Of a stretch of DNA of 64,000 bases, positions 1 to 17,006 are shown in pieces; positions within the stretch are counted from its first letter, which is position 1; each line of letters begins with the position of its first letter. A program made the position numbers and the translations under genes. This DNA comes from Amoeboaphelidium protococcarum X5. Its lineage: Eukaryota > Fungi > Aphelidiomycota. The stretch is taken from assembly GCA_023515725.1 (NCBI GenBank), contig JALDTO010000214.1:1-64000 (forward strand), read 5' to 3'. The notes beneath the pieces are model-generated. The model did no database searches, had not been told where the DNA came from, and saw nothing but the letters and a program-made list of their open reading frames with translations.

Positions 1-2
1 CG

Positions 3-3000
3 CATTCTTCCAACGTCAACCTTAACGGTTTCCGTTTTTGCACTTTGCACTTTTAACAATAAGAGCATTATATTAAGCCTCGCTCGATTCTGGTTCTGTG
101 GGATATGCTGACTGCAGAGTATGATTTTGAGAAGCATTTGATTATTAATCTGCTGATGATCTTTCTAACCTTTGCTCTGAAGATTGGCGATTCTGGTGCT
201 AATAATCGATTTCAAGTTGGCGCTAATAATCCTGCAAACTAAATGTCATTTGCAGACTTTTCCAATAGCATCTTCTGTGCATGTATTTACGAGACTTTTG
301 AACATGCGAGCTGGTAGGTGAGATTTGTTGGGTTGGATCACGGCTTCGGTTTGCTCAGTAAGATGAGTGAGTCCCTCATTAAGAAATACGATAGCTATCT
401 GTGGTTGTTTGGTCCTCTGGTGACTTATTTGATGTCTTGTGTTCTTGATGAAGAGGAGCATGTTCGGCTCAAGTCTGTCTCCTTGTTACGTAGTCTTGAT
501 CCTTCCCGCCTCGATATCCTGGTGGCAATTTGGTAACAGTATCTTCTCATACTGGATGATGTGGAGCAGAAGATTAAAGTCCTTCAGGTGATGGTTTACA
601 TTAATGGCGTGTTTCCAGCGTTGCATCTATTGTCTTGGTCTGCTGTCTTTTAACTTTTGGAATGGAAACCATCCAAGGTGAGCAGTAACAGGTAAATGGC
701 TAACGAAAGCGGACAATTGCTTGATGCTAAAAAGTAATCTGCTCTAAACAGAGTAGTGCATGACTTGCACTTGCGTAATTTTAAACTTGCTGCGTTCAAT
801 GTGACTATGAAGATGATTGCGATTGGGTAGTCAATCTCTAGGGAATACATGGCTCGCGTTTAGGTGTTGGCGGCTTAACACGTAGGTTTCCTAGATGCGT
901 CTTACAGCATGAAGACGGATAAGAATATTCTCGTTCATTTTGGACCGGCCACGTTTAATGTGAAGAATCCATCCCATCAAGAGGCACTACTTATTATTTG
1001 CCGTTCTTGTAAGGTGATGTTTGATAAATTTAATGTTGATGTGTCTGATTCTGGTATGGGAATTGCTAGTGCGATCACTATGAAATCTGTAATCAGTTCC
1101 GATTTTGGTAATCGCGGAATGTAATAGAAATAGGCGGGTGGCGTTAATGGAGATTTGAAGAATTAAGCTGCCACGAGATCCCTTGCCAATTCAGGATTTG
1201 AGCGTCTATTGTCCAGGAGTGAACGGATAAAGTAGTAATCGCGCATTATGATAGAGATGATGTCACATCTGAATGATCCTCCAGAGTTGATTTTCTTCTT
1301 TGATCTGATTTGTCACACCGTGAACAGTGCTGATGTGGTTTGCTAGTTAGACCCAACACTTCTCAAGTGCTGGCTGGACTGTGTCTTTATATTTATCTAT
1401 AAATTTGATGTAGAGTCGCAGGAGTTGCTACCAAAGGTGGTATTTGTTATGAAGACACTTTTAGCTGCTATTTTGAGCGGCAGTGTTTCTGACGAAGTCG
1501 CGCGAATTGCCATCGCTCTGTGCCATGTCATCTTACGAAGATCAGTTGTTATCACTACTGAGATTATGGTTGAAGAGTTGCTGACGTTCAGCCTTATCAT
1601 TGTTCGCCTTTAGAGTCACAAGTCTCATCAGTTGGTGCTGAGAGCTAAAATATTTCTGAAAGCCCTGTTTGATGTTTTCTATGACAGTGGATTATTTATA
1701 TTGGTATTTACTGGGAAATTGGACATTTCTTCAAATCCTTTCTACAAGTAGATTGCAGCTTCCTGTTAGATATTGGAAAATGATTTGTTCGGTGCTCTAT
1801 TTCAAGTTTGGACCAGCTAGCACTCCTCTAGAGAGAATTAGGCTCGAAAGTTTCCATTTTACGAATTGCCTATCCGTGATGTTGCTCAGCGTATCTGGCT
1901 TTACAAATCTTTTACTAAAGAGGAGTTCAATGCCATTATTAAGAATATGACGCTGTTTATCGTATAGACTCGACCACCTCTACGTGGAAGAAGTGTCTGG
2001 GGAGAGTTGTCGCAATTCTTGATCAATCTCACCGTTAAGCCTCTATCATGGAAAAGGGAGTAGTGGAACGTTGATTGTATCCTTGATCTGTGCCTTGTTC
2101 TGTGTAATTAATACAGTAAAGGATTTAAAATGATTGCCACTGCTCTCAAGATTTTGCTTGTACATGTGATTGAAAAGTGTTAGTTTGAGGTTGATGCTCT
2201 CAGTGCTCTTTTGCAGTAGTGTCACGTCTCCCAACTGAAGTAGGAGAATTCTCGTGCTGAAAATGTTAATATTGCAGTGTACAATTTGATCAAGTCCAAG
2301 TTGTTGTCTGATAGTTCCTCCTGGTAAAAGGCTAACTAGAAGAATATATATTCGTTTCTTTTGCAAGACTTTGAGTCTCATTTGAAAAGATCTAATCTAT
2401 TGTACTCTGAAGTGGCGAACGTTAACCAAAATGTAGTGTTTGGTACTAATCTGGCCACCCAGTCTGCTTTGATTACTCGAAAATTGATAACTACTGTGTA
2501 ATCAGTCGCTTCTGAAGATCGTAAGGAGTATCATGAATTGTCGCTACTTTTGGCAAATTTGTGTGTCTTGATGTGGAAGGATTTTGATAATGCTATTTAG
2601 CCGATGCTTTTTAGCAAGAAGCTCTAAGAACTGGACGTGGGATAGTTTTTGCGTTTATCAGCACCGCTTTTACTCGGTGCTTGTCGCTATTTTGATTGTA
2701 ATTTTTCGCTGGCTTTACTGCAGAATTGGTCGAAATATTTGAATGCTCTTTAATTCATATTGAACAGTATCGCTGATAGTATGGGAAATGGCGGTGTCAG
2801 TTAGACACGTACAAAGGGAGCAAAGATTGGCAGTAATGATAAGACTACTTCATTTTCCCCTCTGAGAACTGCAGTGTTGAGTCCAAAGAGTGATAAGGTA
2901 GTTAATCCGTTTGATAAAAAGAATGTTAATGATAAAGATTCCAATGGCGCTGATTAAGCAGATGCGTTATCCGTCGTTAGTTCGGTATTCTTCATCATCA

Positions 3001-3458
3001 AGTGTCTCAGCCTGCTGTGCTCTACTGTTTAATAAAATTTGCGTCCCTATGGTGGAAAGGAGGTAACAGTGCTCGACGTCAAGATTAGTATGATGACTGA
3101 GTTGGTGTCCACAGCAGAGTTGTAAGTATGGAATTACATGTGGCCATCGCTAATGCAATTACTGACTAAAGAGCATTATGGCGTTGATGGCAGAGAGGTA
3201 AATACCAAGTATAACAATTGGCAATACTTTCTGGAGACTGTCAATTTCTGGCGTCTATCATACTCTGACATTTACAGATGGCATAGTGTTGAGCTGGTGC
3301 AATTTATTGACGACCATATGGTATTCCTGGATGATAATCTCGCCACTCAAGCTCAGTATCTGATTAAATGCTCTAAAGAAACAGCCACTGAAAAGCCCAC
3401 TACAGAGTTGCTGCTCTCTCAGTTGGTGGCTGAGTACCTTGGCAATACTGATGTATGA
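3..3458 (+). CDS. UNC79-like HEAT/ARM-repeat protein (NALCN/Cch1 channel auxiliary subunit-like), 5'-truncated by the window edge, >1150 aa
   Basis: One code-6 frame links track fragments 318, 909, 1425 and 3138 and ends at TGA 3456-3458. The segment WQVRF...LMSCVLDEEEHVRLKSVSLLRSL...KVLQVMVYINGVFPALHLLSW resembles the remembered UNC79 segment WKIRF...FLTAVEDVNPAVATRAGLLLDTI...ILSKLLLLHFLKQDIPALSW. Confidence 0.6.
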
Positions 3459-3682
3459 AACGCTACGTGAAGTATTCTAATTTTATATGTGTTTACAGGT
3501 ACAATGATGTAAAAAAGCCTTGTACGTTACAATGGCCTAAAGTTGCGTGCGAACTTTGTATTGTTGGATCGTTGTGATGGAAAGTGTTGGCTGTGTGTAT
3601 CTACAGACTTCTACCAATTTATTTCTTTAACTCCTTTATCATCAATTCAAATTTAAACAGCCAGCAATAAAATATACTAAGT

Positions 3683-6600
3683 ATGTCATACCAAGCTAGA
3701 TCAAAATTTCTGACCAAAACTGGTTCTACAACGTCTCTGAGAAAGTTGAACAATCAGGATGTTGATAGTAGTAGGACCATCAATGTCTCTCTGTGCGCTT
3801 GCACTTGTTTCTGGATACCTAATAAATAACATGGATATTCACTGGCTCGATTTACTGATGATCAAGGAGATACACTGAAGAGAGAAAAGCATAAAGTTTC
3901 ATCTTCTGACCAGTTGTATGTGACTGTTTTTGAGTTGGATCACTTGATCGACTCGATTCTCTAACAACAGGCAATAGTTGATGGTTCACTCTTATTTCAG
4001 GTATGATATAGAAAATTTTATATAGTTTTACATATATTCTATAAATGTGAATGTAGGATACAAGAGTCAATGCTAATGATATACAGAGAGCTGCGGTTGA
4101 AGTGCAGCAAGTGTACAATCCATTGTTTGATCAGGACGATGATTTCTCTGCTGAAACGATTAGAGATCAACTTTTACAAAGACGCCTACAGACTCCGTGG
4201 AAGCGCTGCAACAATGATGCTGACGTACTGTGTCTTTATAAAGAATAGGTATTATTTGGCAAGTAGCGGATCTCTTAGCAAATGGAAGCTTTCGTGAATC
4301 TGGATGTTAATTATTTTGGTGTGAAGGGTGATGATTAGCGTACTGCATCCAATAATAATGTATCCAGTAGACCCGCCGTTGTGATAGGAATTAATGATTA
4401 GAATAATTATGAGATAGCAGCTGCGCGTATTAAATAGGCAGGATCAATTTGCCAAAATGCTTATGATCTGCTCAGAATGTTCACTACATAATCAATGAGT
4501 GGTGGTTAGGGAGAAGCGGCCTCGCGTTTATTGGCGGTGGAAATATTTGACTCGAGTCAAGCAACTCCTTTCAAGATTCTATCTCTGTCCAAGAGTTGTA
4601 TTTCTCTAGGTGCATTGCGCTAGTGCCAAACTTTTTAGATATTTAATGCTGTTAGTTATGCAGTGTGTAATCCATCACGCGCAAAGCTTTTTGATTTCTT
4701 GCCTCAGTAGACTGCTGCAGTATGCTCATCTATATTTGGAACATCAGCATCATCTTCATCATAGTCTAGCGGGGAATAATACGCTTAGTTTGAATAACAA
4801 ATTCATTAATTGTAATTGAAAGATGAGCAAGTGAAAATTCTGCTGAAGCTATTGACTGCCATTGTACTTGTAAGCGCCGTAGAGTTCAAAGAGAATCAAG
4901 ATCAATCCGCAGAGTCAACCTTATCCATATAAATTGCAAGTGACCGCAATGTAATTGATAGTGCTAGTCAACTACTTGGCCTAGAATTTTCTGCCCTGGT
5001 AATGATTCTGTTATGTCAATTTTCTAGTGTTGGTGACCAAAGTACGGGTAGAAGCTGGTTTAAAGCTCAGAGAATAGTAGAATGCTAGTCATCAAGAGAT
5101 CAGTTTTGCAGATATTTGTATCAAAAAGTTGTCGAGTTGGTTGTGTGGTCTATCAATGAATATATCAATACCTCCAAATCGTAATAATTAGCTCAATCCT
5201 CATCTCACGTAAAAGTGATCAATATTCCAGCATTCCAACTTGGAGTTGGCGACTTTGACTCGTTCATTTTCAATTACGTGAATGAGAAGGTCCATCATCA
5301 TTTTCTGGCTACGAATGCTGTTGCCCACTTTAACATATTTGAGTCTAATAATTCTATTGTTCATGGAATAAGTAATATCGAAAATGGTAATTAAATAGTG
5401 AAGAATCTGGCTGATAACCTGAATGTGGTGAGTGGTGGTAGAACTAGCATATTCTCCTAGATTGATGACACGCTGAAAATGCCAGATTATCCTAATGATA
5501 CCAATCTCACCATGAACATTCATCGCACATTCCAAGGTGTTACCAAGACTTTGCCTGACTTTGTGTAGAACTTCCAGGATCCTACCGATGATTAGATAAG
5601 AAAGCTGTATTAGCAGTACCTTCGCTGCAGACACGAAGAGGGATTCATAGTGAGACACTTTGATAGCCAGGCTATTTGTCTATACCGTACACAAGGTTTT
5701 AGTGAGTTTAATGCAGAGAACTTGGAAGGTGCTTTTGATGAGTGTTTGTTGAAAAATGTGCCTAAATTACCTTAAGATTCTGCATTATATTCTATTATGG
5801 CTCAGTTGAAGATCAATGCCAGTCAGGAACCGTCATTTGTTCAGTCTCCAAGTAGTGCATCGAGAATGAATTTTCATCTATCGCCACTACAAAGTAAGAC
5901 TGGTAGTTAGTTTGCCGTGCCCAAGTAAGGCAAAACAATTACTAGTGTCTGCAGTAGAGTAAAGAGAGAGTGTATTGGATTGCTAAAGATGCTGTAAGAT
6001 GGGCAGTATCGGGCTGTCTATGATGTAGTGTGTCTATCACTTCGGCACAATAATGATAACGGTGGCGCGTAATAGTTTATTGATGGCTCTAAAATGCTGT
6101 TGTAGATGAAGATGTGGAATTTGATTCAATTATCTCAGCTGCAACAGTTCAGATTTGGCTATGAGTTTTCTATTGCTCCTCTACTCAATAGATTTAAGCC
6201 GTTTATGAAAGACTTGAGACTGAGTATCGATTTATAGAATCCAAATTCCTTTTGTCTGGCAGTGTTGGATGCTCTGGGTGTAGATCATCGCCGAGGTGGT
6301 GCGTACGTTTCTTCGTCTTTGCGTATACTTCTCAGTAATAGTGTGACCGAACTGAAATAATCCGATATTGAAATCTTGTCTGGGAGTGCATCAGCTGAAG
6401 TTTATCAACAGCTTTCGAACCGCGTCGTGTCTGCATTGTTCAGAGTTAAATGGCATCAGTATCACTGTATTGCGTTAGTCCTGGTGCGTCTGAGATCATC
6501 TGCTGTTAAGAAGCCTCCTGCGTAGTTGCTAGAAGCTACATAGCTCACTAGGCCATTGTCCATGTTTGATATGCTGTCTAATTTGAAAGTTTCACATTCA

Positions 6601-7803
6601 ATGAAATAGCTCCATGGAAGTCAGGCACCTTTGAGTAAAATACCTCATTCTTCTTCAAAGTAGAACTTGATTGCCGTTCTGAATGGGTAATAGTCCGAGT
6701 TATCGCCAGTTGTTCAGGATTCATCCGATAAACGTATTTCAGAGCAGGTTGAATAGCATCGCTTAGTAAAGACTTAATCTGTGCAATCAATTGGGAGTCT
6801 AGAGTCCAAGATTGATGATGGCGAGAAGCAGTATAGGACGAGTTAGATTCACAATTTAGTGCGTTAGAGCCAACCGCAACTGACTGGTGTTCATTAGATG
6901 TAACAAGCACTGGTAATTGGTGATCAGAATGGACAGAGGCCTATATCAGCATCTTCCAAGATGATTGCTCACCTGTCGCAGTAGATCAATATCAAATCAT
7001 CGGATAGTAGTCGCCACAATAGTGCCGATGTTTTGGATATTCTGGGTAATTATACTTACAACGCGACTACTTCTGTTGTGTATTCTCAAGAATAATCGTC
7101 GCCGTTGTCCCAAAGTTATGTTGTTGATTATTATCAGTAGTAGTAGCCTTATTCTGAAGTAGCTTCCCCTCAATTACCAAAGAAGTTGTCAGGACCTGAT
7201 ACTTAACATCAAGTTCCTGATCAGAAACAGCCTGAACGTGTTTAGCCTTTAGATCGCCTGAAATTCATTGCGGCCAAGTTGAAAGAGCTTGTGCAGACAC
7301 AGCCTAATGCCAATGCTTAAATTACTAAGCTGAAGGATGAATATCTGTCAGTATGCCGTTACATTGAGAAGGAAGAGCTTGATAAATCGAAACTTAATTT
7401 GAACGAGAATGTTTACATTAAAGTCCCTACTGGCACAGGTGATGGAATTATCTCGGTAGAATATTAGTTTGATTCTAATAGCAAACAATGGTAAGTTAGT
7501 AGGTAGATTATTGAGCGAAAGTAAAGCATAACGTCCTCAAAGTATCTTCTTGTTTAAAGCCTGAAGTCTGTGGAGGCACAAGTGAATACTCTGACAGATA
7601 ATGAAAAGTAAAATGTTCTAAAGCTGATGAAAAATGCTATAGACTCTGGCTTGATGGTTATTGATGAATCTTAAAAGTTTATGTTGAAAGGTTAGCATTT
7701 TGTGTTCACAAGTTTAATAGATGTCGGTATGTTAAGTAAAGATCTAGATAGTGCAAAGTTTAATGCTTAATGGAATTAGATTATAAAACTGTCGTAATAA
7801 TGA
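3683..7803 (+). CDS. Highly divergent myosin VI-like protein with degenerate motor; exons 3683-4000 and 4057-7803; 1354 aa
   Basis: Phase-0 GT-AG intron 4001-4056. Myosin-head blocks: KLLTAIVLVSAVEFKE, SRDQFCRYLYQKVVELVVWSIN, FDSFIFNYVNEKVHHHF, EEGFIVRHF, NPNSFCLAVLDALG. Insert-2-like RVVSALFRVKWHQYHCIALVLVRLRS and a C-terminus resembling the myosin VI cargo-binding domain. No GESGAGKT. Confidence 0.75.
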
Positions 7804-7854
7804 TGAATTTAAGTGAAATAAATTTGATTAATATTGGTACATACTAAAAGCTTA

Positions 7855-10800
7855 TCAGTACTTGATTAATTCATCCAATTCGGGGAATACACAAATCAGC
7901 AAGTCTTCAATCAATCTGCGAACCAGCTCATTATTGTATTATTGATTCTAAAGCAATTCAAAGATCTTTAGTATACCCTTCTTAGCATTGGATCTTCCGA
8001 CCATCTGTCCCAAGATATCAGGAACCACCAGTAGTAACTTCTTGTGGGCGTCAAGTCGTGTGCGCTCTTTCTACTCTTCACTACGCGGCACCCAAGGCTG
8101 ACTTGGCTTCATTACATCACACAATCGCCTGGCATACATGGTGAGCATTTCATCCGTATGGAGACTGGACACCACTTCTCCAATCTTACGTTCTATCGCA
8201 CCACCCATCACTTGTTGCAGAATTAACATCACAGCCTATCGCCGCAACCAATTGTTCTTCTCCTTCAGTTCAAACATCTCAATGAACAGCGCGCATAACG
8301 ACTCGGACAATGACGTCTAGCCGAGCGTCTTCTCATCCAAATGTTTTGGTAAAAAATCGTCATCAGGCGAAGGAGAGGAGATGGCAATCTTGGGAACTAT
8401 ATTAGGCATAGTCTCATGATTGATGGACGAGTATAGACTGCTTTCGAGTTCTTAATCAGAGTCTAAATGACCAGGGGTTACGTGCTTGTTCTTGGTAGGT
8501 GAATCAGATTCCACATTGACACTCTTGCGTCTGCCAAATGTGAATTATGAAGACTACGCTGCAGGTTGCTGCGATTAATAATTAGAATTCTATGGAGAAG
8601 TTTGAGCAGATGATGTAACAGAGTCGTATTAAGGATTATGATGATGATAAGAATGAGTATTAGTAGTAAAACTACCGATAGATGACGCGTCCGAATCCAT
8701 TTCATCAATCTTACCAGCCTTGTTACTATTACCAAAAACCTGGCCAACTTTATTACTAATCGCATCAAGCAGCGCATTCGGAGTAGATTTGAATCTCTTC
8801 CGTTGCTTTACCACTTTAATAGAATGCTCATCTTAAATCGGCTTCTAGCCGGAGCTGATATTCCCGCCAGCCGATCCAGCACTTTCATTCAAGTGAAAAA
8901 TATTCAACAATTTCTTTACATTGAGCGGATTAAATGGCAATATACTCTGCAGAGGACCAGTCTTGAAAGATGACGTTGTTTTTGAATTGAACTGGTCTTG
9001 ACACAAAAACTATCGAAATTCCCACGACTTGGCAATTACGGGATCATTCACCAGATTCCTCAGGTAACGCTCCAATTACACTCTTCGACCTTCTACAAAG
9101 TCACGTTCCTTCTTATTTTCAAAGAGGGAGTTGGCAGACGATCCACTAAGTGACTTGAAGTGAAGATACCGCTTCCCAGGTAGATCATATCCACTTTTAC
9201 ACATAATCTGAGGATATTTCTGCTTCAACTCTTTATTCAGACGATCAAATTCAGAGTATCGACGCGCTATAATCCATCCCTTGTAATTATTAATCTCGAT
9301 AATATACACTACAAACTACTATTACTGCTACTACTACTGCTGTTACTACTAGTTCTAAGACTGTGCGTTCAAAGCAGAACTATCCGAGGAAGATCCAGAA
9401 GCAGAAGAGTCGACAGAATAAGACGGTATTGAAATCTTGGTCTATCCAGGCACGACAAAATTATCAGAGATTGACAATTCCATGGTATTCCGAAGATTAT
9501 CGAGAAGAGTTCGCTCATTCTGGAACTACGTCTTCATTTTACGCATCAACTTCACTTCCTTCTATCCCAACTTACTCCCAGCAAACTACTCTTAATCTTC
9601 ATCGGCCAATTTATCAATCATGGCATTCAAAAGCTCTTCTTGATGTAGCAGCTTCTCTATTCTCTCATTAATCTTCTTAATCTCAGACTTTACCGAATCT
9701 TTACCACCCGTAGGGCTACTCATATTTAAAAACTAACGATCATTATAATCAGAATCGCTCTCCATAGACGGGCTAACCATCGCACTATACTTTGCTTCCT
9801 AATCATCACCCTCAGCCTCTTCATCATCTTCAAATTCTTCGCTAATCTTGTCAATACTACTACCACCAAGACTCTCCTGTAACTCTGATTCTTCTTCAGT
9901 ATCGCCAACACCTTGCGTCTACAGATCATCAATGCTCTTAGTGGCTTGCGCGCTTTTAATAGACGTAACACTATCCTTATCACTGAGCTCGGTGCCATAG
10001 CCGTCAGATCTGATGATTGACTAGAAAGCCTTCTCCACAGCCTCAATGTCAATCTAACTAATTACATCTGAAGATTTTTTAAGCGTGTTACTCTTCAAGC
10101 TGCCACCAAAGGATGCATCGACACTTTACAGATCATTTGATTATTATTATATCTACTGAGACTGCTTTACTGACAACTTAGACTATTCATCAGATTACAC
10201 CTAGGACAAGTCAATCATATTCTAATTTTACACTCTAGCAATGGTGGAAGCTGAAGGGATCGGCTGTGATATAGGCTACTGCTGAACCAGTGAGTCCTAT
10301 TACTTGGTAGGAGATCTCCTTCCCAGTGACAACATTTTCTTAAAATCATTATAGTTACTACTAGTATAAGAACTATTCATGGGTGATGTTTACTGCTATG
10401 ATACCTACTACTACTGGGCGAGAAGAGACTAATACTATTGCTACTGTTTATGCAGAATCTCATAACACTAAGCCAGAATAGACAGAATTTACACCTACCC
10501 TTCAATATGATTGAAGTTTCGATTCTTCAACATTGGCATCAAATCTCCCAAGGACCGTATCAGCATATCATTGTCACCATGTCGTTATACAATCTGTTGC
10601 AGAGCATCCGAGACAATGCGAACTTCAGCAGAGTTTTAATTACAACCGGCAAGGTGAGTAGATATAAGAGCCAACTTTTCAGCCACAATATCAGAAGGAG
10701 ATCTATCAGTCACGGCCGAGGTTATTACATTTTATTTAATCTTCAGAGCAGACAGCAGAGACTTGACAGTATTATCAACATCAGCCAAAAACTGCACTTT

Positions 10801-11775
10801 AACTTCAACAATCTAAGGATTGAAATCTGCAGGTAAAGTAGAAGCAGACGCAGTAGTCGTACTATCCAAGACTTTTCGCATCTTATTCACAATCACCTGC
10901 TCAGCAATATAAGCATCCATAACAGATACTATAGTCTAATTCCAAAAATCTGGATCACTTAACAGATTCACTACGGGATTATAAATGTAAAACAGAACAA
11001 TCTTGGACAGGAACAGCTACTCAATAGAGGCCACGTGTTCATTCTGAGTGAGGAGATCGATCACTTTACGGCAGAGTTTAATAGCCAAAGCCTCAGATCT
11101 GGCGGCGAAGAATGATGACTATTGTCCTTGCGATGATGATGATTACTACTAAATTTACAGCCTCTTCCTGGTGGACACATGTAATGTTATAGATTTGAGC
11201 ATTCTCTACAATAAGGCAGTCTAGTCAACAGCAACTAAACGATCATGCAGCTTATCCAGAATCTTGACAAGATACTAGTCAACGTATAGTGTGAATGGCA
11301 TTTCATTTCGTAAAGTCATCATTGTAATCAGTACCTGCTGATCTGTAATTCGATAAAGCCAAGACTCTATAAAGTCAACTTTAATGATCTTGAACACGGA
11401 ATTAACAGCATCATTAACGCTGGAACTATATCTATGAACTGCAAATGTCTTGGAATGTCTTGGTAATGATCGCATCTACGATTAACGAGGAGAAGTATTC
11501 TAGAGCTCACCATTGATTGAAGAACCACCATCTCTTTATGAATCAAAACTTTACAACAAAGACACAACTTCATCGGTAAATATTATGCTATTCCTAGTAG
11601 ACGTATTGTTATCTTCATTCTAATCCACCCGCACAAAGAATCTAGATAACTCTTTTCTATTCACAAATACAACTATAGCAGGGACACCAACCAGTACAAA
11701 AAGCAGAGTAAGAAACAATAACCTCAGCACTGGGGACAACAATAGAAGGATGAATATGCTCCAGAACTTCCACAT
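7855..11775 (-). CDS. PXA-PX-PXC sorting nexin (Mdm1/SNX13/14/19/25 family), 1306 aa
   Basis: N-terminal hydrophobic segments, PXA-like KVDFIESWLYRITD, PX motif IARRYSEFDRLNKELK..LPGK, and Nexin_C-like end PDILGQMVGRSNAKKG..CVFPEL. Single frame in code 6. Confidence 0.85.
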
Positions 11776-12429
11776 TCTCTCAATAAATAAATCTGTTCTC
11801 CTAGTACGAAATAAAACGAATCTTTACACAAATTTATACTGGTGACGGATTACGAGAGAGAGAGAGAGATCCACATGGAGTTAAAACACTTGATAACAAA
11901 GAGAGAAAGGACATAAAGCGACAATGGTTAAATGTGATGTTTCACCGCCTGTCAAAGACTCAGTGAAAAAATGTGAACCAACCGCGTAAAAAAGCTTATC
12001 TCTACTGAAACGACAGTTCGGAGATAGTAAAAGAGAAACGGTCGATAGAACACGGGCTACATTATTGGTGGGAGATTCAAAAACAATACGTATAGCTCAA
12101 TCGACTCGTCACAATGCCGTAGACTTAATAGAGTAGCCTTGAGTACAATTTGTTTACCCCCAAAAGCATCAGGAAATAAAGTGGCGACGCATTTGGAGAG
12201 ATAATAGAATGCATGGGTAAAGAACGTCTACGGTCTTTCTAACGCGCGTCGTTCTTTCTCTTTCTCCCTTTAAAAGCGGATAACTCGCATACGAAACACT
12301 TTCTCGTCCGACTAAGCCATAGAGCAAAAGCGAGCGCGACCGCAAAAGAGAGAATTTCTTTCTTCCTGGTATTGCTTTCCTTCCTTCTTTCGATTCCTTG
12401 ACGTAATATTAGGAAAGAACCGAGCAGAA

Positions 12430-13910
12430 ATGAATTACAATATTGCAAAAGTAGGTTTCTTTAGAATAGATTGTGAAAGTAAGTAAATTAAACTTGAATT
12501 TTGTAGAGAGCATTAGCGTCAGTCGGTGCCACAGTCAGGCCATCGATCTCCACCAAGTAGGCGCTGATGAACGTGCCAGAGACCAGAGTGACTACTCTAT
12601 CGAATGGACTCAGAGTGGCCACTGAACATGCTGATAATGAGACTGCCACTGTCGGTCTGTGGATTGGTGCTGGCAGTAGATTCGAGACGGAGAAGAATAA
12701 CGGCGTGGCTCATTTTCTGGAGCATCTCATCTTCAAGGGCACTGAGAAGAGATCTCGCGTCCAGATGGAGAAGGAGATTGAGAATATGGGTGCCCAGTTG
12801 AATGCCTACACCTCGAGAGAGTAGACGGTGTACTTTGCGCGCTGTCTCAAGAAAGATGTCGGTCAGTCTGTGGATATTATTTCTGATATCCTGCAGCATT
12901 CAAAGTTGGAGGAGAGTGCAATTGAGAATGAGAGGAGCACAATTCTTCGCGAGAAGGAGGAAGTGGAGAAGGTGATGGAAGAGGTTGTATTTGATCATTT
13001 GCACGCAACCGCTTATTAGGGAACGTCTCTTGGACTCACTATTCTGGGTACTGATGCTAATATTAATTCCATCGGTAGAAAGGATCTGACTGATTACATC
13101 AAGACTCTTTACACTGCTGATAGAATGGTCCTTGTGGGTACTGGTGCAGTTGATCACGATGCTTTGTGCAAGATTGCTGAAGAGAAGTTTAACTCTTTGC
13201 CTTCTGCTGCTGCCTCTTCTTCCCTATCCGCAAAGTCGCTAAAGTCTTCTCTGATTGTGCCACCTACTGAATTCACTGGCTCTGAGATTAGAATTCGTGA
13301 CGATTCTATGAGAGATGCTCATATGGTGGTTGCTGTTGAAGGTGTTGGTTGGAATCATCCGGATCATCTGCCTCTGTTGCTGGCTTAGACTATTGCCGGT
13401 TCTTGGGACAGATCTTTGGGTAACGGTGCACATCTGAGCAGTAAATTGGCGCTGGCTGTTGCAAAGGACAATTTGTGCGATTCTATCATGTCTTTTAATA
13501 CCACGTATACTGACACTTCCTTGTTTGGTCTCTACATGATTGCGTCTGATCGTATGAAGTTGATCGATCTGTGTGAGACCACTCTGCACTTGTGGACTAA
13601 AATTGCCACCAGTGCGACGGAGACTGAGCTTGTACGTGCCAAGAACTAGTTGAAGACGAGTCTTTTGTTCTCACTGGATAACAATGTCAATGTTGCTGAG
13701 GACATTGGACGCCATCTGCTGACTTATGGTAGAAGAATTAGCCCAAGAGAGATGGAGTAGATGATTGACTCTATCACATTGACTACTGTGCGCGATGCTG
13801 CAATGAAGTATATCTACGGTGTAGATCCTGCTGTCGTTGCCATGGGTCCTATTGAGGCTTGGCCTGACTATGTCGTTCTGAGAACTAAGATGTCACAGAA
13901 GCTATTCTGA
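12430..13910 (+). CDS. MAS1: Mitochondrial processing peptidase beta subunit (M16); exons 12430-12450 and 12507-13910
   Basis: [35 protein letters not shown] (HxxEH), [10 protein letters not shown] with Q encoded by TAG. GT-AG intron 12451-12506. Confidence 0.95.
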
Positions 13911-14074
13911 GAGTCTGAGTTTGAGATGAAGATCTATGAAAGACTTTAATAATTTGAATAAAAAATCAGATTATCTTAAACGATCTTTTATTAATTTATA
14001 TTATCATTATATAATTATTATTAGTGTCCAGCTTAAATCTATATCACTGAGATAAAGCTAAAACAATGGAGTTC

Positions 14075-15034
14075 TCAAGTATTATCTTAACGGCCACCCA
14101 AAAACAAAGCTGAAAGTGCGCACCTACAAAATTTGAATTCAATTGCAAGGTTTACTACAGTAGCTGGCAAGAGTATCAGAACAAGAAACGGCACAAACCA
14201 TCCTGCTTACAATATCACTGCCACAACCAAAAATACCATGCAGTAGACAAAGACGAGAATTCTAAATATTTTCAGGCGAACTCGTACAGTATCAGTTATA
14301 TTCGCGCCTAAATACCATCGATAAATCATCGCGCCCAACCAGAGGCCAAGAATTACGATAGTTGCAATTAAGAAATGCCGGTAAGTTGCACTAGGATGCT
14401 CAAAGGGGTGCCAGAAAAGATAGCTTTTGCGGTTTTAGATTGCAAGATACTCTTATCTCGCTTCCTCGAAATCATAATCTTCCGAATTAGGGTCGGTGCT
14501 CATGAGGCTACGGGTCTAAGCAATACAATCACTCACAAAGTCATTGGTTCTAGACATGAACTTAATGAGACGATTGGTAGTTTCACGTGGATCATCTTGA
14601 TTACTGTCCAGAATATCCAGTACTTGATCTGCTTCATAGCTATTACCAGTGGCTTAGGTGACAAACTGAACCAGCTTTCTTGACGCGTCTGCATAGTCAA
14701 CCCTTTGAGAGAAGCGCGCGATCAGTTGACTGGAGTGTTCAACCATTCGAGGTGCCATGTTTTTAGCATGCTCTATAATTGGATCTAGGGAGAATGATAT
14801 ACCATCCATGGTATTTCTCGCAATTTACTTGATAGCTTTTAGCACCATTTAATCGCCGCCTGTCATCTCATGCATCATACGATTGAAGACATCCTTGTCA
14901 TTAACGAATTCTCCACTACGCAGAACGGCATTGATATCAGATTTCATAAAAGCTCCGACGCGCACTGATTAAATCGCCGGGAAGAAGCAGTTGGCCCACA
15001 ACACTAACCACGAGAATAGAAGAGCATAAAACAT
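14075..15034 (-). CDS. Orphan membrane protein, paralog A (319 aa; N-terminal hydrophobic segment, helical middle, about 3 C-terminal TM helices)
   Basis: Open code-6 frame from ATG to TGA. About 78% identical (hand count) over the first ~180 aa to 17007-17930. Confidence 0.85.
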
Positions 15035-15321
15035 CTTATAATTGCAAAGTCAGTCCCTCAATTGAAAATCCAACAAAAGATAATTTGAATGTGGCGTATG
15101 ATGATAAGGTTGATAGATGAATTTTACTTATCGCCCTTGTAAATACTACCCTGCTCTGAAATGCATTCTTGAATGTAGAAAGGCAGATAAAATTCTTCCG
15201 CTATATAGATTTATTACACCACAATATGGGAACTTAGTCTATCTCTCGAAACTCAGACCTGGATCAAAAATACAGTATATGCAAACTTCTTCTTTCAAAT
15301 CACTAGATTAATTTCCTCTGG

Positions 15322-16308
15322 TCAAAAGAATATTCTACGCCATATAGATTAATCTTAAGCAGCAGCTGAAGCTTAAATTGGCGTCGGTTCGTATGAATAC
15401 GTTTGAGTTAATGGCGACGCGTTAAACTAAGTCGCTCCAGTCAGAAAGGATACGATAGAGTTCACCGCGTTCCAAACTGAAATTACGCCAGTCTCGGCCA
15501 CAATGAGACCATCTAGGGCGATTCTATGAGCTAAACCAATAGCCAAGTCCATCCATCCCAGCATTCTAACAATCTGCCACAGGACCAGCGAAACTAGTGT
15601 CAATTCCCACAGTATAAATATCACTCGCCAGAAAAGATTCATGCTCTACATTAGCCTGAAATGCGCGTTCATTAATGCTCCCAAGCCGAATAAGTCACTC
15701 AAAGAGAATGACATACTGACATTGGACATTGACAGCAGATTGATAGAGGTGGAGCTGGCTGTAACAACACTTTTCTACGACGCTGCATAGATTGGATGTT
15801 TTACAACAGGTAGCAGAGATGATGGGGTACGTTTCAATTCACGCAACAACACCTTATCTGTTACAATACTGGTTGATGATGTCCTTGGAGACTGACCCAG
15901 ATCGCGATATTCTTCTTAAAGCACGGTACCAAATTTCGGATGTCTCTTCTTGATCACGCGCTTTTAATAATAATGATTTCGCCCAGTATCGTCTACAATA
16001 GCAACAACTTCGCGTTGCTCAGTCGCTTTATCACTTGATATTGATAAAGTTGAGACAGCTTGGTTACTATACGATTGGAATGCATTTCGCACATTAGATG
16101 CTTACAGCATTGATTGCCAAATCGAACTTTTCTGTATTTGCATATGTTATGGCGATTCTGCATGTTATTATGCCACATTCAACTAATCTTTTGGTGGTAA
16201 TTCAGGTGGTGTTTCATTCTAATCGCAGTTAGATGCAGGGTGTTACTCTTTTGATGTGTCTTCTGCTTTAACACTCACCTTCTTTCCAATACCAAAAAGT
16301 CTTATCAT
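15322..16308 (-). CDS. Orphan protein (328 aa), polar N-terminal part, C-terminal hydrophobic helices
   Basis: Open frame MIRLFGIGKK...FWRVIFILWELTLVSLVLWQIV...WRRIFF-TGA; includes track ORF 15427..15642. Confidence 0.75.
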
Positions 16309-17006
16309 TTCAAATTGATAACAAGCCAAGTCGAATATTTATTAAAAAGATATATTTGAGCTTCAAATTCTGATTGAATTAAATATCAAAAAATTAACTT
16401 TAGGCTATTTATATAGATCCAAAATCAATCTTAACACTTTCTCAACACGATTGGGCTGGCCGCACTCAAACTGCTTTGTGTGCATTGCATTTCTAATATC
16501 TAAAACAATCTTCATAGATTTAGTTGGCTTAAATTAGTATAAAAGTTTGCGCACACCGAATAACGTATAGCTTTGACATGGGAAGATGGTTGAATAATAC
16601 GCAATAGGGGGAACTTCATTAAAAGTGAAAGTCTATCCAACTATTAAATAGCGTTCACGTAATGTTTTGGTTCAACTTTTTTACCATCTGATGGACTGAT
16701 GGAGCACATATCCTTTTAGGATCGACTCAAGGTAACCACTCGAACACAAAGACAGCTATAATTTTGTCGATGGATATAATGAATACATTATGTGACGAAT
16801 TTAATAGCGATAGTTATTATTGCACTGTAAGTGAATGATTTGGCTCCCTGCATTACAGGGATAAGATGACCCCTTAATAAGACTATGGGGTAACTGTTAT
16901 TCAATCAGATCATCCTGCGCCACAGTCTCACTCATCTTTTGTGAAAGTATACAATACTATCCATTTAATATAGAAAATACATAAATATCCAAAGCACGCT
17001 TCTTTG

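Follow-up and report, generated by a model that had tools for sequence, protein, structure and literature searches.

Amoeboaphelidium protococcarum is an alga-parasitising relative of fungi, and a gene in its genome raises the question of whether a myosin with an erased nucleotide-binding site can be traced to class VI, and what such a protein would still do. Class VI has been described in holozoans and apusozoans, not in fungi (PMC3942036). Another survey restricts it to Holozoa and, in addition, lists myosins whose P-loops and switches are disrupted (PMC5583752), and in the aphelid Paraphelidium it was the sole ancestral class not found (PMC6299283). The gene lies on the forward strand of contig JALDTO010000214.1, of which the first 64,000 nucleotides (the window) were analysed. 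An initial annotation, made from the letters alone, had described an intact myosin VI derivative that kept the reverse-gear insert and the cargo tail and lost the ATPase motifs.

Gene model, expression and selection

Under translation table 6, positions 3683-4000 and 4057-7803 form a frame of 1354 aa with a single TGA stop; long frames in the window open up only when TAA and TAG are decoded as Gln. Exon 1 (3683..4000, aa 1-106) probably encodes an SH3-like segment near the N-terminus (~3788-3937), which has no Pfam match. It is followed by a 56-nt GT-AG intron (4001..4056), whose position is common to both copies of another strain (56 and 58 nt), and by exon 2 (4057..7803, aa 107-1354 plus the TGA), in which 68 in-frame TAA or TAG codons are read as Gln. 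These and all features below are on the plus strand. The two-exon model first proposed was recovered in its coordinates, intron and genetic code, and the motifs quoted with it each lie where they had been placed.

The model is identical to MIR68_008688 (NCBI, here P0005) of A. protococcarum. A stop-free piece of the window led to the full-length protein P0001, named in NCBI as a hypothetical protein of the same species, and the search with P0001 led on to P0004 and P0005. P0001 and P0004 come from another assembly of the species, where the gene is present in two copies that share the neighbours and the intron position of the window. Whole-protein searches and folds were run with these three proteins; stop-free pieces of the gene searched singly against Pfam, PDB and Atlas gave nothing useful.

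In the assembly of the window the gene is single, while most other myosins are paired. Its partner is missing because a block of about 17 kb lacks a homeolog: for window 77-16900, no homeologous copy was found in the same assembly except for 14509-15046, and in the assembly of the other strain the part around the gene is present twice. Loss of heterozygosity, deletion or collapse are the readings considered. A sequence of 70-76 nt at window 1-76 occurs across the genome in at least 25 near-identical copies, several of them at contig ends, and may be an assembly-breaking repeat. The neighbours at 3-3458 and 7858-~11800 are large genes for which no Pfam match is recorded; they keep their synteny across strains and evolve under purifying selection.

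Two sequencing runs (X9 and X12, with no library type recorded) are about 90% identical to the window and therefore come from a related strain. Their contigs jump 56 nt at the intron, with no second joint seen, and the X9 contig is colinear with the window from ~3668 to 7835. They are read as spliced RNA, that is, as expression of the gene in the related strain. Since the contigs have no further joint, there is no room for an exon that would restore a P-loop; this possibility, raised with the initial annotation, was ruled out.

The open frame has the same length in the three copies, up to a dS of 0.3, and the coding-region indels listed between strains add up to multiples of three or offset one another. 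Against the other strain, dN/dS is 0.18-0.19 at a dS of about 0.3 (bootstrap CI 0.15-0.23), far below the value near 1 that had been named beforehand, together with no expression, as counting against the first reading. Together with the open frame and the spliced contigs, this bears out the description of the gene as intact. By region, dN/dS is 0.28 for aa 191-345 (the nucleotide pocket), 0.10 for aa 346-670 and 0.11 for aa 781-925, and 0.17-0.29 for the C-terminal module; the pocket is the fastest-evolving part of the head, and its interval just touches that of aa 346-670. Residues 545-615 are nearly invariant across the three copies. The head as a whole stands at 0.18, compared with 0.01-0.07 for the working-myosin heads of the genome, and the two neighbour genes stand at 0.06 and 0.09-0.11. 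Purifying selection is clear, though looser than in the working myosins or the neighbours.

A myosin head without its nucleotide site

The protein is a member of the myosin superfamily by both head homology and fold. PF00063 matches above its cut-off (74-75 bits with P0001), beginning only at profile position 235 and covering the upper and lower 50K, relay, SH1 and the start of the converter (4771..6282, aa 345-848). A profile built from the genome's own myosins aligns aa 337-851 with 101 bits, and global alignments stay colinear through the N-terminal part of the head. Identity to other myosins is only about 15-20%, and alignments place insertions in the lower 50K region and in loop 2. The modelled head matches myosins in Foldseek (E 1e-11) and VIA-align (Z 16-17), in keeping with the fold first proposed; since a myosin alignment went into the model, this match is not independent. 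That alignment had 19 rows and gave a mean pLDDT of 44, with low confidence outside the upper 50K and without resolving the P-loop and insert 2. Myosins from giant-virus bins were used unchanged, solely as alignment rows and comparators; four of these (L025, L028, L034 and L038) carry GNSGSGKT where GESGAGKT is expected.

The region of the lost P-loop (4318..4413, aa 194-225) contains no GxxxxGK[ST], and its register differs by method. MAFFT and hhalign place the site at aa 194-201 (window 4318-4341). The initial annotation had placed it at aa 213-225 (~4375), where no consensus is present either; this register is slightly preferred because a conserved hydrophobic strand precedes its Gly. Neither the consensus GESGAGKT nor its Gly-Lys-Thr was found in the head of any copy, and the sole loose Walker-like match, at aa 726, falls in loop 2 and is not conserved. 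Degenerate switch I (4510..4533, aa 258-265) aligns as AASRLL to the consensus NSSRFG, with Ser-Arg alone retained (Arg263). In switch II (5221..5238), NIPAFQ stands for DIxGFE, so that the Asp, the Gly and the salt-bridge Glu are all replaced. Apart from one Asn-to-Ser change, both motifs are common to the three copies, and alignment reproduced the readings GEAASRLL and NIPAFQ made by eye.

The loss of the P-loop and switch consensus abolishes the ATPase cycle of myosins. On this known chemistry, the protein is very probably unable to bind Mg-ATP normally or to hydrolyse it and would therefore have no power stroke; with the site lost, minus-end motility is not expected. A precedent is Drosophila myosin-18, which binds actin and not ATP, and for which the same Pro and Gln changes in switch II have been discussed (PMC3122231).

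Evidence for and against a class VI origin

The affinity to class VI comes mainly from sequence searches. Against all PDB sequences, the top 18 matches are myosin VI (36-38 bits), followed by the next class at 24-25 bits, and aa 600-930 alone retrieve only myosin VI from the whole PDB (18/18, E ~1e-4); myosin VI in the PDB is effectively one mammalian sequence. Two blocks are class-VI-like, the EGFIVRHF region (5623..5730, aa 629-664) and the stretch from the SH1 helix to the converter (6076..6285, aa 780-849). They share 16 and 20 identities with myosin VI, and the best values among 22 other heads are 11 and 14. Both had been compared with MYO6 in the initial annotation and do align to myosin VI of the PDB. 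In Foldseek, myosin VI fills most of the top rows by a small margin, with a folding alignment that held no class VI sequence; VIA-align does not tell myosin classes apart, and the structure models are of low confidence.

The score margins are narrow in other comparisons. Within the genome itself, the heads of class V and of the short class I myosins reach 31-32 bits against the protein, near the myosin VI score, and in a three-sequence profile search myosin IE comes within 2.3 bits of myosin VI. Insert 1 and insert 2 are listed as class-defining for myosin VI (PMC11040104). Insert 1, which adds 26 residues by PDB numbering, is absent as judged by length, a point overlooked in the initial annotation: from the switch I Arg to the helix at aa 358 there are 92-95 residues, and in non-VI myosins this span is 87-107, in most of them 93-95.

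Where insert 2 would be expected lies a conserved hydrophobic helix (6421..6498), whose resemblance to the insert had been noted in the initial annotation. It lies about 46 residues past the last aligned converter position, compared with about 38 in myosin VI. HMMER alignments to myosin VI end before it, PF21521 is not matched and the searches run detected no insert 2, so the insert described as kept is better reported as a conserved helix at about the right place. The spacing of its Trp and Leu residues presumably fits a calmodulin site. Neither an IQ pattern nor the class VI lever of single IQ, three-helix bundle and SAH was found, and Glu, Arg and Lys make up at most 33% of every 40-aa window of the tail, in agreement with the earlier reading by eye.

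A linker of 240 aa rich in Ser and Gln (6514..7233), with no IQ, SAH or long coiled coil, leads to the C-terminal part. In the model of this part, a helical hairpin precedes three strands and helices. The predicted hairpin (7246..7374, aa 1170-1212, pLDDT 67-81) stands in place of MyUb, and the beta/alpha module behind it (7411..7782, aa 1225-1348) is a candidate degenerate cargo-binding domain (CBD). We take this order to resemble that of MyUb and CBD, with about 45 aa inserted. The RRL motif of MyUb and the WWY motif of the CBD are absent. Filtered searches of the tail against Pfam (including PF16521), PDB sequences, Atlas, Foldseek and VIA-align, the last two with a tail model of pLDDT 50, gave no match; the top fold matches are helical hairpins of a generic kind, ribosomal S15 among them (Z up to 6). 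The claim that the cargo tail was kept thus obtained no CBD match by profile or fold.

Homolog searches, a representative search and metagenome scans yielded no distant ortholog or class VI protein, and the gene has so far been seen in one species, with no ortholog found outside A. protococcarum. The suggested look-up of a canonical MYO6 paralog was run on the 19 PF00063 matches of the genome and found none; the other matches were assigned by motifs and tails to classes I, II, V and XVII and to two MyTH4 types. Among these, myosin V (L007/L008) has the P-loop GMSGAGKT and the short-tailed myosin I (L010/L012) GVSGAGKT, and their heads are strongly constrained (dN/dS 0.03 and 0.07). A second single-copy and strongly altered head, L015 (G000:C68:7869-9335, minus strand), has the P-loop GNSGSGKT and a switch I ending in SSRCH, and is probably class XVII-like.

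With the PDB searches favouring myosin VI and insert 1 missing, the first class VI call stands in part. The sequence comparisons suggest that the protein is probably derived from class VI; since the evidence is mixed, it is not filed as a member of the class.

Proposed role, alternatives and known systems

In the role proposed here, the 50K subdomains would still bind F-actin, insensitive to nucleotide. The long flexible linker would join the head to the C-terminal module and give it reach, and the small module would bind a membrane or a partner protein. An actin-binding head, a linker and a partner-binding module would thus make a static tether between actin and cargo. Calmodulin may still bind to the post-converter helix, and the loss of insert 1, IQ and SAH would fit a protein without gating or stepping. 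As a whole, the account of an expressed and selected class-VI-derived pseudo-motor that, in the manner of Drosophila myosin-18, would tether actin without responding to ATP is the most likely of the readings, at a shade under even confidence.

Several alternatives bear on parts of this account. A class-VI-derived, ATPase-dead protein might no longer bind actin, its head serving as a folded scaffold for other partners. The low identity to other myosins, the insertions in the lower 50K and loop 2 and the relaxed dN/dS of the head would suit this, and myosins with reduced or missing actin-binding capacity are on record (PMC5583752). Against it, constraint peaks in the 50K region bearing the actin interface, where aa 545-615 hardly vary, and a scaffold seems unlikely. 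A slow or nucleotide-binding motor with a remodelled site would account for the retained Ser-Arg of switch I and for the presence and constraint of relay, SH1 and converter. It is very unlikely given that no copy has a P-loop Gly-Lys-Thr in its head, that three switch II residues are replaced, that the pocket evolves fastest in the head and that the lever has no IQ.

The class VI likeness could also be due to chance or long-branch effects in a dead orphan of another class, such as a duplicate of class I, V or MyTH4 type or a relative of class XVIII. The missing insert 1, the lack of tool matches for insert 2 and CBD, and the small margin in total score point in this direction, as do the Pro and Gln of switch II shared with Drosophila myosin-18, the comparator heads including no class XVIII sequence. 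This origin is nevertheless improbable: two separate blocks match myosin VI only across the PDB, with identities well above those of the 22 other heads, and neither TH1, DIL, MyTH4, PDZ or long coiled coil nor the insertion of myosin-18 after switch II is present. Membership in class XVIII was rejected for the lack of PDZ, of that insertion and of a long coiled coil, and membership in class XVII for low scores against the genome's class XVII heads and the lack of a chitin synthase domain. The single copy among mostly paired myosins might raise the suspicion of a pseudogene in decay, or of an artefact of assembly or annotation. It is scarcely credible and largely refuted by the equal open frames in three copies, the dN/dS and the spliced contigs; the block without homeolog explains the missing partner, and the other strain has two copies.

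The tether reading can be extended to evolution, more tentatively. Class VI would then have left its first known trace on the fungal branch of the opisthokonts, surviving there only as a pseudo-motor with insert 2 and a tail derived from MyUb and CBD. Such a protein would connect actin to membrane cargo independently of ATP and represent an intermediate in the loss of the minus-end motor toward fungi; this possibility has somewhat less than even confidence. If true, class VI would have persisted into the sister group of fungi, its loss would have passed through a motor-dead stage that standard motif-based surveys miss, and the anchoring role of myosin VI would have been separated in nature from its transport role. 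A literature search that covered papers other than the A. protococcarum genome paper found no description of the gene. Dead myosins are already known, and a dead class-VI-like one in a relative of fungi appears to be new.

Among known systems, myosin VI (class 6; MYO6, Jaguar) gives the best sequence match of the head. Both proteins have the two blocks typical of the class, a hydrophobic helix of non-IQ type behind the converter and a small globular module ending the chain. Unlike myosin VI, the protein has no P-loop or switch consensus, insert 1, IQ, SAH, RRL or WWY, is not matched by the lever and CBD profiles, and occurs in Holomycota, from which class VI is reported to be missing (PMC3942036, PMC6299283, PMC5583752). 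Fungal chitin synthases (class 17B) have degenerate myosin-like heads, which are likewise eroded motor domains kept in the fungal lineage, but these heads are fused to chitin synthase, whereas the protein lacks that domain and has low scores against the class XVII heads of its own genome. Myosin-18 keeps a near-consensus P-loop and has a PDZ domain, a long coiled coil and characteristic insertions, all of them missing here. In function, however, the closest parallels are the ATP-blind actin tethers, Drosophila myosin-18 (Mhcl), with its Pro and Gln in switch II (PMC3122231), and Limulus class 21, whose heads are likewise predicted to be unable to use ATP; by analogy, the A. protococcarum protein probably works as they do.
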